Source: Schizochytrium sp. TIO01 | Taxonomy: Eukaryota > Protista > Bigyra: Labyrinthulomycetes | Length of the DNA stretch: 64,000 bases | Reading direction: 5' to 3' | Assembly: GCA_004764695.1 (NCBI GenBank) | Contig: SMSO01000033.1 | Coordinates: 1-64,000 of the forward strand | Shown: in pieces, positions 19,126 through 46,030 of the stretch | Numbering within the stretch: position 1 is the first letter of the stretch | Layout: every line of letters starts with the position of its first letter | Notes under the pieces: generated by a model | What the model saw: only the letters and a program-made list of their open reading frames with translations | Told to the model about the DNA's origin: nothing | Databases searched by the model: none | Translations under genes and position numbers: made by a program

Positions 19126-22100
19126 TTATTTCAATATATAAGGGCCTAGACACCCCAATGTTGCACGAAAGGCAACGTTTGCAGCTTCCAGCAAATCAAG
19201 CTCTACTTTCTGCGCAGCAATATAGTCCTCTTTTGAACTCAGCATACCAGACCTGTTCGCAAGCCGACCTTGGGCAATAAGACTATGCTGCACTGAAAAC
19301 GGCAGAGAAAGTGCATCGTTTACAACATGTATACAACGAAGCTCACAAGATATCTGTATAAGACTTGTCCTTCTTGTCTTTGCAGAACAAATTTGCTCAT
19401 TCAATTCGAGCTCCTCACACATTTCATCCGTGAACTGGTCCATCCTAGAAATCAGTAAAAACCAAATAACATCAACTCCGTTCGTTAGCTAACAATTTCA
19501 CGTCATCAAAAGGCACCCACAGTACTGCCGGTACAGTTTCATTTAATCTTTGATGTTATCATGCTCTCTGTTAGATCCACACTCAACCAAACAAACAATT
19601 CCACAACAAACTTGCAATGGCGCGAAGAAAAACATCGGCAAAACAGCACACTAGACAACCCACCACGCAACCAACCAACCAAGTCTCATGCACAAACAAG
19701 TCCACGAGCTACTGCTTAGACAACTTACGATAGTGATGTCAGCGACCGGTTCTCTTTCAGCGCCGCACCCACTGCCTTGGCGCCCTCGTCGTTGATATCG
19801 TTGCCATAAAGACTGTTGATTGATTCAATGATGGCAAGCAATACATTACACGTTACATATTACAATAGATGCACGCATGCATGCATGGACGTGAGTGATC
19901 TAGGTTGGCTCTCAGCATTTATCTTTGTTGTGTTGTCATTTTGCTCTTTGTTCGATGGATGTATACTCACTCAAACAGACAACACATCCATCCATCAAAC
20001 AAACAAGCGATTGCATAAACTTGCAAAACAACACCGACCCACCCACCAAACAACAAATCAAGCATCATGTACAAACAAGTCCACGAGCTGCGGTGTTGCG
20101 TAGACAACTTACTATAGCGTTGTCAGCGACCGGTTCTCTTTCAGCGCCGCAGCCACCGCCTTGGCGCCCTCGTCGCCGATATTGTTGTCAGAAAGACTGT
20201 CGATTTGATTGAAGGATGGCAAGCAATACATTACACGTTACATATTACAATAGATGCACGCATGCATGCATGGACGTGAGTGATCTAGGTTAGCTTTCAG
20301 CATTTATCTTTGTTGTGTTGTCATTTTGCTCTTTGTTCGATGGATGTATACTCACTCAAACAGACAACTCATCCATCCATCAAACAAACAAGCGATTGCA
20401 TAAACTTGCAGAACAACACCGACCCACCCACCAAACAACAAACCAAGCATCATGTAGAAACAAGTCCACGAGCTGCGCTGTTGCGTAGACAACTTACTAT
20501 AGTGATGTCAGCGACCGGTTCTCTTTCAGCGCCGCACCCACTGCCTTGGCGCCCTCGTCGCCGATATCGTTGCCCGAAAGACTGTCGATTTGATTGAAGG
20601 ATGGCAAGCAATACATTACACGTTGCATATTACAATAGATGCACACATACATGCGTGGACGTGAGTGATCTAGGTTGACTTTCAGCATTTATCTTTGTTG
20701 TGTTGTCATTTTGCTCTTTGTTCGATGGATGTATACTCACTCAAACAGACAACGTGTCCATCCATCAAACAAACAAGCGATTGCATAAACTTGCAAAGCA
20801 ACACCGACCCACCCACCAAACAACAAACTAAGCATCATGTACAAACAAGTCCACGAGCTGCGGTGTTGCGTAGACAACTTACTCAAGTGATGTCAGCGAC
20901 CGGTTCTCTTTCAGCGCCGCAGCCACCGCCTTGGCGCCCTCGTCGCTGATATTGTTCGCAGGAAGACTGTCGATTTGATTGAAGGATGGCAAGCAATACA
21001 TTACACGTTGCATATTACAATAGATGCACGCATGCATGCATGGACGTGAGTGATCTAGGTTAGCTTTCAGCATTTATCTTTGTTGTGTTGTCATTTTGCT
21101 CTTTGTTCGATGGATGTATACTCACTCAAACAGACAACTCATTCATCCATCAAACAAACAAGCGATTGCATAAACTTGCAAAACAACACCGACCCACCCA
21201 CCAAACAACAAACCAAGCATCATGTACAAACAAGTCCACGAGCTGCGGTGTTGCGTAGACAACTTACTATAGCGTTGTCAGCGACCGGTTCTCTTTCAGC
21301 GCCGCAGCCACTGCCTTGGCGCCCTCTGAGCCGATCTGGTTGCGTTCAAGACTGTCGATTTGATTGAATGATGGCAAGCAATACATTACATGTTACATAT
21401 TACAATAGATGCACGCATGCATGCATGGACGTGAGTGATCTAGGTTGACATTCAGCATTTATCTTTGTTGTGTTGTCATTTTGCTCTTTGTTCGATGGAT
21501 GTATACTCACTCAAACAGACAACCCATCCATCCATCAAACAAACAAGAGATTGCATAAACTTGCAAAACAACACCGACCCACCCACCAAACAACAAACCA
21601 AGCATCATGTACAAACAAGTCCACGAGCTGCGGTGTTGCGTAGACAACTTACTTGAGTGATGTCAGCGACCGGTTCTCTTTCAGCGCCGCAGCCACTGCC
21701 TTGGCGCCCTCGTCGCCGATATTGTTGTCAGAAAGACTGTCGATTTAATTGAAGGATGGCAAGCAATACATTACACGTTGCATATTACAATAGATGCAAT
21801 AGATGCAATAGATGCATGCATGCATGCATGGACGTGAGTGATCTAGGTTGGCTTTCAGGATTTCATCTTTGTTGTGTTGTCATTTTGCTCTTTGTTCGAT
21901 GGATGTAGACTCAGTCAAACAGACAACCCATCCATCCATCAAACAAACAAGCGATTGCATAAACTTGCAAAACAACACCGACCCACCCACCAAACAACAA
22001 ACCAAGCATCATGTACAAACAAGTCCACGAGCTGCGCTGTTGCGTAGACAACTTACGATAGTGATGTCAGCGACCGGTTCTCTTTCAGCGCCGCACCCAC

Positions 22101-23201
22101 TGCCTTGACGCCCTCTGAGCCGATCTTGTTAAAATCAAGACTGTCGATTTGATTGAATGATGGCAAGCAATACATTACACGTTGCATATTACAATAGATG
22201 CAATAGATGCAATAGATGCATGCATGCATGCATGCATGGACGTGAGTGATCTAGGTTGGCTTTCAGGATTTATCTTTGTTGTGTTGTCATTATGCTCTTT
22301 GTTCGATGGATATATACTCACTCAAACAGACAACTCATCCATCCATCAAACAAACAAGAGATTGCATAAACTTGCAAAACAACACCGACCCACCCACCAA
22401 ACAACAAACCAAGCATCATGTACAAACAAGTCCACGAGCTGCGGTGTTGCGTAGACAACTTACTATAGTGATGTGAGCGACCGGTTCTCTTTCAGCGCCG
22501 CAGCCAATGCCTTGGCGCCATCTTCGCCGATATTGGTGTATCTAAGACTGTCGATTTGATTGAATGATGGCAAGCAATACGTTACACATGATACATTACA
22601 TTAGATACACGCATGCATGCATAGACGTGAGTGATCTAGGTTGGCTTTCAGGATTTCACCTTTGTTGTGTTGTCATTTTGCTCTTTGTTCGATGGATGTA
22701 TACTCACTCAAAAAGATAACTTATCCATCCATCAAACAAACAAGCGATTGCATAAACTTGCAAAACAACACCAACCCACCCACCAAACAACAAACCAAGC
22801 ATCATGTACAAACAAGTTCACGAGCTGCGATGTTGCGTAGACAACTTACTTGAGTGATGTCAGCGACCGGTTCTCTTTCAGCGCCGCAGCCACTGCCTTG
22901 GCGCCCTCGTCGCCGATATCGTTGCCTCCAAGACTGTCGATTTGATTGAATGATGGCAAGCAATACATTACACGTTACATATTACAATAGATGCACGCAT
23001 GCATGCATGGACGTGAGTGATCTAGGTTGGCTCTCAGCATTTATCTTTGTTGTGTTGTCATTTTGCTCTTTGTTCGATGGATGCATACTCACTCAAACAG
23101 ATAACTTATCCATTCATCCATCCATATATCCATCAAACAAACAAACAAACCAGCCATTGCACAAACTTGCAAAACAATAACAACAAAAGGAACACCGTGC
23201 A

Positions 23202-45300: not shown

Positions 45301-46030
45301 ATGCATGGACGTGAGTGATCTAGGTTGGCTTTCAGCATTTATCTTTGTTGTGTTGTCATTTTGCTCTTTGTTCAATGGATGTATACTCACTCAAACAGAC
45401 AACTCATCCATCCATCCATCAAACAAACAAGCGATTGCATAAACTTGCAAAACAACACCGACCCACCCACCAAACAACAAACCAACCATCATGTACAAAC
45501 AAGTCCACGAGCTGCGCTGTTGCGTAGACAACTTACACGAGTGATGTCAGCGCCCGGTTCTCTTTCAGCGCCGCAGCCACTGCCTTGGCGCCCTCTGAGC
45601 CGATCTGGTTCAAGGTCAGACTGTCGATTTGATTGAATGATGGCAAGCAATACATTACACGTTACATATTACAATAGATGCACGCATGCATGCATGGACG
45701 TGAGTGATCTAGGTTGGCTTTCAGCATTTATCTTTGTTGTGTTGTCATTTTGCTCTTTGTTCGATGGATGTATACTCACTCAAACAGACAACTCATCCAT
45801 CAAACAAACAAACAAGCGATTGCATAAACTTGCAAAACAATAACAACAAAAGCAACACCGTACAAATAAAGCAAGCAAGCAAGCAAACAAGCAAACAAGC
45901 AAACAAGCAAGCAAGCAAACAAGCAAGCAAGCGACCGAGCGACCAAGAGTACCTTGTTAACTTACTTCAATGTCGTAGCGCCATTCCGAAGCTGTTCAAG
46001 GGCATAGACAACACCTGGGTGGTCTGACAT
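39393..46030 (-). CDS. Multi-exon LRR-Roc-COR-TIR (ROCO family) protein (gene C), 1147 aa
   Basis: Exons (minus): 46030-45966 (MSDHPGVVYALEQLRNGATTL), 84-nt LRR exons 45620-45537, 45231-45148, 44842-44759, 44457-44374, 44072-43989, 43687-43604, 43298-43215, 42904-42821, 42515-42432, 42119-42036, then 41931-39393 (in frame with ORF 39393..41906). All GT-AG, phase 2; 3444 nt. Roc motifs GKGGAGKT, STIGVD, WDYGGQEVFY, VGTYLD; COR LKFMHELGVIVH, VILQPQWL; TIR YDVFLSHAWG, CWLD, YCRYE, MIPV. Confidence 0.92.
42036..45850. repeat. ~385-bp tandem repeat array (exon+intron units of gene C)
   Basis: Ten units with 385-396 bp exon spacing, nearly identical to the gene A array. Confidence 0.95.

Follow-up and report, generated by a model that had tools for sequence, protein, structure and literature searches.

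The question raised by one chromosome end of the labyrinthulomycete Schizochytrium sp. TIO01 is whether the long tandem repeats lying beside its ribosomal DNA (rDNA) are spacer sequence or genes. The stretch analysed here, referred to as the window, comprises 64,000 nucleotides (positions 1 to 64,000 of the forward strand of contig SMSO01000033.1, assembly GCA_004764695.1), and its repeats correspond to elements described in Aurantiochytrium limacinum as LORE-TEARS. In that organism, chromosome ends have been reported to carry TTAGG telomeres of ~500 bp, rDNA transcribed toward the telomere, and LORE-TEARS at fixed positions, namely Group 2 (~366 bp), Group 1 (~406 bp), Group 0 (~385 bp, between 18S and 5S), and Group 5 (~421 bp, near 5S) (Collier et al., bioRxiv 10.1101/2023.06.15.545109). 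The preprint presents them as repeats, as an earlier note on this DNA had said, reports that they lack similarity to GenBank entries, and proposes a role for them in chromosome-end maintenance. In the literature searched (without the Curr Biol 2023 journal version), the term LORE-TEARS appears only in the original preprint, and no re-reading of these elements as genes was found. The earlier note had proposed that the ~385-bp and ~421-bp units each hold one exon encoding a leucine-rich repeat (LRR) and together build a modular, receptor-like gene family. The analysis described below makes it nearly certain that the ~385-bp LORE-TEARS of Group 0 and the ~425-bp ones of Group 5 are tandemly duplicated exon-plus-intron units of expressed protein-coding genes, and it also points, at lower confidence, to a function of these genes as sensors.

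Five long-period tandem arrays are reported in the window by Tandem Repeats Finder, and three of them are LRR exon/intron arrays, each belonging to one gene: a Group 0 array of 385 bp × 8.9 on the minus strand (19658-23118, gene 1), a Group 5 array of 425 bp × 8.8 on the plus strand (25595-29320, gene 2), and a second Group 0-type array of 389 bp × 9.7 on the minus strand (42065-45840, gene 3). In six-frame translation, every unit shows a ribonuclease inhibitor-type (RI-type) LRR motif (L..N.IG.EGAKA...) a single time; the 385/389-bp arrays carry it on the minus strand, the 425-bp array on the plus strand. The motif is surrounded by only one 84-nt candidate exon bounded by AG and GT, which keeps the same phase throughout and starts one base ahead of the Leu codon. 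Each 84-nt exon encodes one 28-residue RI-type LRR and is phase-2-symmetric. The window holds 28 such exons (9 + 9 + 10) and one of 99 nt (25431-25529), a count identical to that of the earlier note. Two of them (43604-43687 and 22464-22547) fall outside the first motif pattern, with F for I or T for N, and are nevertheless intact; the RI-type consensus LxxLxLxxNxIGxxGaxxLaxaLxxNxx, with its 28-residue period, is present in 28/28 exons. Five 84-nt exons were submitted singly to Pfam and matched LRR_6, four with E values of 1e-3 to 4e-3 and one with 0.03; all are below the gathering score, as is to be expected of one partial repeat. The 99-nt exon, likewise submitted singly, gave no LRR_6 match. 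The open frames that a simple scan reports on the plus strand within the minus-strand arrays are antisense frames without protein-like content, as the earlier note had supposed.

The units are not only regular but intact. When only the intron 3' end is used to locate them, 96 units are found in the window and in pieces of five other chromosome ends, and 95 of these contain a stop-free 84-nt exon with AG and GT borders. In the remaining unit (contig 4, 1-10000, minus-oriented position 6073), AT replaces the GT donor in an otherwise intact exon, which may be skipped or may use another donor. The introns themselves form a strongly conserved repeat family of about 300-345 nt, and those of Group 0 are 83-96% identical within and between chromosome ends. 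In fact, two intron families can be told apart, one shared by the genes that end in a tail and in a ROCO-TIR module and a second one found in the genes that end in a kinase and a RING-between-RING (RBR)-like finger, in keeping with the modular family proposed earlier.

Joined by a local script, these exons yield three models that run from ATG to stop over 379, 1263, and 1147 amino acids, with no internal stop and with GT-AG borders in 33/33 introns, which bears out the three stop-free spliced genes of the earlier note; database searches were run on single LRR exons and on the terminal exons. Gene 1 (19126-23374, minus strand, 11 exons, 379 aa) consists of a start exon (23310-23374), nine 84-nt LRR exons (22850-22933, 22464-22547, 22057-22140, 21653-21736, 21268-21351, 20883-20966, 20498-20581, 20113-20196, and 19729-19812), and a tail exon of 105 aa (19126-19444). 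The tail, which is lineage-restricted, matches no Pfam family, and its AlphaFold2 model is all-helical at low confidence (pTM 0.34).

Gene 3 (39393-46030, minus strand, 12 exons, 1147 aa) has the same construction, with a start exon (45966-46030), ten 84-nt LRR exons (45537-45620, 45148-45231, 44759-44842, 44374-44457, 43989-44072, 43604-43687, 43215-43298, 42821-42904, 42432-42515, and 42036-42119), and a terminal exon (39393-41931) in which Pfam finds Roc (3.1e-18), COR-A (1.3e-11), TIR_2 (5.1e-13 in one search and 3e-14 in another), and TIR (7.7e-07). The Roc domain keeps its P-loop GKGGAGKTS and its DYGGQ and TYLD motifs, and COR follows it directly, the arrangement that defines a ROCO protein. 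The TIR domain contains the beta-A motif YDVFLSHAW and is matched by the bacterial TIR structures 7uxr and 3h16 (phmmer); a candidate catalytic Glu lies in ...DYCRYEFEY..., past the point where the alignments to these structures end. The upstream regions of genes 1 and 3 are homologous to each other, and an (AAGC)n/(GCTT)n microsatellite occupies the equivalent site in both, in intron 1 right after the start-exon donor (23202-23297 and 45869-45932).

In gene 2 (25222-32565, plus strand, 13 exons, 1263 aa), the start exon (25222-25274) is followed by the first LRR exon, that of 99 nt, nine LRR exons of 84 nt (25879-25962, 26298-26381, 26724-26807, 27145-27228, 27570-27653, 27999-28082, 28424-28507, 28852-28935, and 29272-29355), a linker exon (29526-29720), and a last exon (29877-32565). 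The last exon begins with a helical region of ~420 aa that has no Pfam family and no usable ESM Atlas match, and continues with a Ser/Thr kinase (Pkinase, E = 8.2e-27) that looks active from its HCDIKPEN, DFD, and VAPE motifs (HxD, DFG-type, and APE). The Cys-rich C-terminus (31795-32562) can be read as a RING1-type finger, a long helix, and an Rcat-like finger, the latter (CPxC-x9-GCC-x3-C-x4-CGHxFCxxC) being invariant in four homologues. Pfam gives no IBR or RING match here; phmmer matches are weak (RNF4 RING 6e-4, parkin 0.09, Ariadne-1 0.5), and in a Foldseek search with a model of pLDDT 58, RBR ligases (RNF216, parkin, ARIH1/2, HOIL-1) make up eight of the ten top listed matches, the best at E = 0.006. 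The evidence from sequence and model for an RBR ligase is therefore best called weak but consistent. Of the gene ends named in the earlier note, the short tail, the kinase, and Roc-COR-TIR stand, all three in open models and the latter two with Pfam matches, and the RING/Rcat part is the one that remains weakly supported. No NACHT or NB-ARC match was found by Pfam in any terminal exon of the three genes. Since the Pfam search found no signal-peptide or membrane family either, the products are expected to be cytosolic.

Evidence that these exons are indeed spliced comes from public sequencing runs. Of the runs that a search identified, 18 were guessed to be RNA (20-48 million contig letters) and contain 0.30-0.38 of the query words, and six, of 26-66 million letters, were unclassified and contain 0.43-0.50. 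Contigs of three RNA-like runs from three studies (X1, X2, and X4) and of one DNA-like run (X19) were placed on 40031-46030. In the RNA-like runs there are many joints between one LRR exon and another, whose right side begins at 43215, 43989, 44374/44376, or 44759, that is, at LRR exon 3' ends, and whose left side ends 7-19 nt before the 5' end of the next exon. Between the two sides lie just as many letters as are missing, and the last of them are AAGA, complementary to the TCTT with which the exon begins. As these letters fill the downstream exon exactly, the contigs represent exon-exon junctions with hypervariable codons unlike those of the window copy. Another joint, from 41920 to 42038, comes from a 172-nt contig (129 letters placed, 13 between, and 30 on the far side) and agrees with the predicted 41931/42036 junction of the last LRR exon into the ROCO exon. 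In addition, loose ends at 45610 cross the remaining 10 nt of the first LRR exon and go on into sequence that differs by only a few bases from the 3' end of the start exon. None of these joints is found in the DNA-like run on 40031-46030. Consistently, depth in an intron-only bin (45231-45430) is ~1% of that of adjacent exon-containing bins in the RNA-like runs, against ~20-50% in X19.

Transcriptome-derived proteins tell the same story for gene 1. A search with the tail among 1.84 billion representative proteins gave six matches, and those looked up come from MMETSP or JGI. One of them, the MMETSP transcript P0129, reads from the end of an intron frame through one LRR exon into the tail, which amounts to an LRR exon spliced to the tail, and P0122 (MMETSP) and P0131 (a JGI protein) contain several RI-type LRRs followed by a diverged tail. 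The open reading frame of P0129 begins with MYCLPSFNQIDS, which is what the final 36 nt of the Group 0 intron encode when read in frame; such a start suggests intron retention or the presence of pre-mRNA in that transcriptome. The junctions predicted in the earlier note are in this way found as exact joints in three RNA-like runs, with which the MMETSP transcripts agree.

The genes of the window are members of a large family. Effector modules were counted by six-frame searches of the whole assembly with the window copy as query. Ninety-eight matches to the tail were scored, at 37-90% identity, and 94 of them have no internal stop; for the kinase/RBR-like module, 51 were scored (of 327 first-look candidates) at 60-92% identity, 44 without internal stop; and 15 out of 17 full-length ROCO-TIR copies, at 42-90% identity, are likewise open. 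The receptor-like family therefore has well over 100 members, with at least 98 tail, at least 51 kinase, and at least 17 ROCO-TIR copies. Effector frames of ~850-900 codons that stay open at 8-40% divergence indicate purifying selection on the effectors. Three more complete genes of the gene 1 type were read on contigs 4, 6, and 7, with 19, 14, and 14 LRR exons, open frames, and a conserved start exon and tail, and on contig 5 a gene 2-type copy combines 10 Group-5 units with the linker exon and with a kinase exon whose frame is open. The number of LRR exons per gene thus varies from 9 to 19. Many copies lie no more than ~100 kb from contig ends. Copies of the ROCO-TIR, kinase, and tail modules also occur in mirrored head-to-head pairs deep in long contigs (contig 13, ~4.008-4.079 Mb, and also contigs 7, 30, and 34), which look as if two chromosome ends had been joined in the assembly or had fused.

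The setting of these genes matches the published description closely, and by this match the marine protist examined here would be A. limacinum or a very near relative. A TTAGG telomere occupies positions 1-502 of the window, where it reads as CTAAC repeats on the forward strand (Tandem Repeats Finder), and an 18S-5.8S-28S rDNA unit (9126-14645, minus strand, Rfam) is transcribed in the direction of the telomere. The only 5S rRNA gene of the window (23840-23958, plus strand, Rfam RF00001, 96.5 bits) sits between the divergent starts of genes 1 and 2. The two further arrays found by Tandem Repeats Finder, of 370 bp (1818-5288) and 413 bp (6501-8131), correspond to LORE-TEARS Groups 2 and 1; these have a GC content of 0.32-0.35 and, unlike Groups 0 and 5, contain no consistent open frame or exon-like segment. 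Unit sizes, copy numbers, and placing relative to 18S, 5S, and the telomere are the same for Groups 0 and 5 in the window as in A. limacinum; the difference from the published account is that these two groups are here exon-intron arrays of expressed LRR genes.

Position-specific presence at nearly all chromosome ends, associations with G-quadruplexes, and homogenised units (10.1101/2023.06.15.545109) could alternatively mean that the arrays are chiefly structural or regulatory DNA, serving chromosome-end or rDNA maintenance, and that their coding capacity is incidental or decaying, the exons being pseudo-exons of a captured gene. This is hardly credible in view of the 95 out of 96 units that keep an intact exon. 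In the same way, at the three full hypervariable codons described below, 77 Group-0 exons show 0 stops where 15.4 are expected from base frequencies, complete ATG-to-stop models exist in the window and at three other ends, spliced junctions appear in the RNA-like runs and in MMETSP transcripts, and effector exons are open in paralogues diverged by 8-40%. Arrays that are mostly broken, which would have counted against the earlier note, are not what the six end pieces checked here show. Structural DNA as the sole explanation is largely refuted; a role at the DNA level besides coding is possible.

If the arrays are genes, the next question is what their repeats are for, and here the distribution of variation within the units is informative. 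Nucleotide diversity (pi) is 0.133 in exons and 0.042 in introns for the gene 1 array, 0.126 and 0.023 for the gene 3 array, and 0.158 and 0.036 for the gene 2 array, exon diversity being about three to five times intron diversity in the three arrays. This diversity is concentrated in four codons, with pi 0.49-0.59 against 0.05-0.09 for the other 72 nt. In the motif LxxLxLxxNxI, the four codons are both x of LxxN, the x of NxI, and the split junction codon NN/T (the x of LxL), and all of them lie within ~20 nt of a splice junction. The 77 Group-0 exons from the six chromosome-end pieces encode 74 different peptides, and each hypervariable position is occupied by 10-15 kinds of amino acid; the split codon can never be a stop because the next exon supplies its T. 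A few exon codons ten times more diverse than the introns go beyond what neutral drift would give, and argue for diversifying selection over a background of concerted evolution, or else for a targeted diversifying process. In LRR solenoids, the four x positions are solvent-exposed positions of the beta-strands. By analogy, the hypervariable codons are predicted to encode the ligand-facing positions of the concave beta-sheet, and the same concave-face reasoning has been applied to Ectocarpus ROCO proteins, PGIP, and VLRs (PMC3341825). The diversifying repertoire suggested in the earlier note agrees with hypervariability at precisely these positions.

The targeted process deserves separate consideration, as targeted mutation, micro-conversion, or programmed exon choice at junction-proximal codons could generate the diversity actively, in place of ordinary mutation and selection. 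The clustering of the variable codons near the junction is one reason to think so. Another is the synonymous third base of the last Leu codon, beside the split codon, whose pi of 0.56-0.66 equals that of the hypervariable codons; moreover, the NN/T codon and the uniform phase make any exon order safe for the frame and free of stops, and some RNA contigs show long skips between non-adjacent exons. These skips were considered as evidence of exon skipping or alternative splicing and rejected, since the conserved exon cores are identical and their placement is ambiguous, like contigs being placed at different exons in different runs. No mutator or recombinase has been linked to the arrays, and recent tandem duplicates with identical hypervariable codons, present among gene 1-type paralogues, indicate that divergence follows duplication in the ordinary way. 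Active diversification is therefore regarded as improbable, and mutation followed by diversifying selection is preferred. A related and speculative idea, to which only slightly more credit is given, is that the arrays are the substrate of a combinatorial, possibly programmed repertoire, through alternative splicing or mitotic exchange among the ~100 subtelomeric arrays. Uniform phase together with the NN/T split codon would keep any exon order, skipping, or unequal exchange in frame and without stops. If this were true, cells or clones would carry different receptor sets, a protist analogue, beside the rDNA, of Dscam- or VLR-style anticipatory diversity.

Relatives of the effector modules give some indication of function. 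The closest named relatives of the ROCO-TIR exon are LRR_6-Roc-COR-TIR_2 proteins of Hondaea fermentalgiana, likewise a thraustochytrid (P0002-P0004 and P0007), with ~44% identity over Roc-COR-TIR and the domain order of gene 3; they were compared at the protein level, and their names ('LRRK2', 'NOD2', or 'NLRP1') are automatic annotations. Hondaea variants with WD40-Roc-COR-TIR show that the sensor has been swapped within the ROCO-TIR family. For the kinase module there are three relatives only, all in Logan assemblies, and none of the proteins of the present genome is found in the public sets searched.

Among known systems, the LRR-ROCO exon-shuffling family of brown algae comes closest. In Ectocarpus and Saccharina, also stramenopiles, every LRR is encoded by a separate exon, and these exons agree in length and phase (Zambounis et al., 2012, PMC3341825). 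A 24-aa LRR corresponds there to a 72-nt exon; the exons are shuffled and alternatively spliced, and the concave face is under positive selection (PMC3341825, PMC11378527). The earlier note had pointed to one-repeat-per-exon ROCO and NB-ARC-TPR genes in Ectocarpus. Common to both systems are a repeat number that varies by exon duplication or shuffling, variable or selected residues on the concave face, an LRR array N-terminal to Roc-COR, and their proposal as candidate immune receptors. The brown-algal genes have 72-nt/24-aa 'type I' LRRs and a simple LRR-ROCO organisation, whereas here the repeat is an 84-nt/28-aa LRR_6 and a TIR domain is added at the C-terminus; a TPR-ROCO-TIR protein has been noted in Chondrus (PMC11378527). 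Moreover, in contrast to brown algae, the introns are here a conserved repeat family, the arrays are subtelomeric and alternate with rDNA and 5S genes at practically all chromosome ends, and the LRR-exon design also serves the kinase/RBR-like and tail-only genes. Copy numbers differ as well, since no more than four ROCO copies were found in any non-brown-algal species of the stramenopile-alveolate-Rhizaria (SAR) group searched, Schizochytrium included (Teng et al., 2024, PMC11378527), against at least 17 full-length ROCO-TIR copies in this genome. What is new is thus the genomic setting and the combinations of effectors.

Further likenesses are found outside algae. NLR and TIR-NLR receptors of animals and plants and lamprey VLRs also have an LRR sensor with hypervariable concave-face residues, and the former combine a nucleotide-switch domain with a TIR or kinase output in large, clustered, and fast-evolving families. 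In animal NLRs, RI-type LRRs of 28 aa are encoded on single 84-nt exons. Here, on the other hand, Roc-COR takes the place of NACHT/NB-ARC as the switch and the LRR array is N-terminal, and, as a difference from VLRs, there is no evidence of somatic assembly. Subtelomeric contingency families, such as Plasmodium var, Trypanosoma VSG, and yeast FLO/MAL, are likewise large diversifying families at chromosome ends with frequent ectopic exchange; those encode surface antigens, adhesins, or nutrient genes, whereas the proteins considered here are predicted intracellular sensors whose genes are interleaved with rDNA.

By analogy with these systems, a role of the LRR family as sensors or in immunity is considered rather likely. 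A possible mechanism can be outlined as follows. Splicing would join 9-19 LRR exons into a solenoid, at whose C-terminus one of three or more modules follows: a helical tail; a helical region with a kinase and an RBR-like E3 finger; or a Roc-COR GTPase switch with TIR. Unit duplication, unequal exchange, and conversion among ~50 chromosome ends would homogenise the introns and the structural LRR residues, while selection would keep the four ligand-facing codons of each repeat diverse and stop-free. The solenoids could then bind diverse ligands, and the signal might pass through Roc-COR to the TIR domain and result in NAD-derived signalling or NAD depletion; the alternative outputs would be the kinase with E3, or the tail, perhaps as an adaptor or decoy. 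Taken as a whole, the explanation that expressed LRR gene arrays constitute an intracellular repertoire of ligand sensors, which diversifying selection shapes and which act in innate immunity or in the recognition of non-self, is judged probable, with good confidence.

The same genes could be real and expressed and still not be immune sensors. They might encode RI-type LRR scaffolds or regulators, acting in signalling, the cytoskeleton, the ectoplasmic net, or nucleolar or telomere protein interactions, and their variation would come from endogenous partners or from weak constraint. LRR_6 repeats do occur in many non-immune proteins, and at every chromosome end the LRR genes adjoin rDNA. LRRK2 and DAPK1, for example, are ROCO proteins that do not serve as receptors for pathogens, and the ROCO genes of brown algae respond also to abiotic stress (PMC11378527). 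Relaxed constraint alone is insufficient, however, to account for hypervariable codons whose diversity exceeds that of the introns and synonymous sites around them more than tenfold. The family counts well over 100 members and differs in repeat number from gene to gene; its TIR and kinase/E3 outputs, like its subtelomeric site, are typical of rapidly diversifying recognition families. Such non-immune roles are for these reasons thought rather unlikely, and a sensor repertoire remains the preferred explanation.

Several points weigh against that explanation. The immune role, and with it the possible antiviral or self/non-self function raised in the earlier note, is argued by analogy with LRR-ROCO, TIR, and NLR-type receptors, and RI-type LRR proteins have non-immune roles too. 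Within the conserved portion of the exon, pi is 0.10 at third codon positions and 0.09 at first and second ones; with no excess at third positions, concerted evolution may account for more of this conservation than constraint on the protein does. The array census covers six chromosome-end pieces (the window and five others). As for transcription, the RNA label of X1, X2, and X4 is a guess, and the data are assembled contigs, which give neither expression levels nor full-length isoforms. In addition, contigs of all four runs, X19 included, share ~2-4% differences from the ROCO exon of the window (40031-41931); the junctions hence come from a close strain or from near-identical paralogues and not provably from these copies, and the strain or copy of the window seems to be absent from the runs searched, the best of which contain the 0.43-0.50 of query words given above.

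Other features of the window lie between and beyond the three genes. Between genes 2 and 3, open frames on the plus strand (34884-35627) contain Cys residues in a RING-like arrangement (C-x2-C ... C-x-C-x2-C) and, after these, a charged helical stretch; they have no Pfam match and may be another unannotated gene. Tandem repeats of 52 bp and 83 bp are found at 36337-36870 and 47047-47211, the 83-bp family lying on both sides of gene 3, ~10 kb apart. Past the repeat zone, Pfam matches identify a BT1-family transporter gene (54684-56438, plus strand, E = 2e-11) and a weak Med17-like open reading frame (58483-60504, minus strand).

The significance of these observations lies first in the repeats themselves, since published and supposedly non-coding chromosome-end repeats of a model thraustochytrid are re-read as part of a gene family of more than 100 members. 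This family is largely missing from public protein sets, with three Logan matches for the kinase and a handful of transcriptome matches for the tail, and annotation pipelines that mask tandem repeats would overlook such families elsewhere. The design of one LRR per exon with a hypervariable concave face is extended from brown algae to a distant, unicellular, and heterotrophic stramenopile, with TIR and kinase/E3 outputs added. These results suggest that the rDNA-linked architecture of the chromosome ends may be kept, at least partly, as a diversification zone for sensor genes. Finally, the organism can be cultured and carries persistent mirusviruses, which makes it a testable system for innate immunity in protists.

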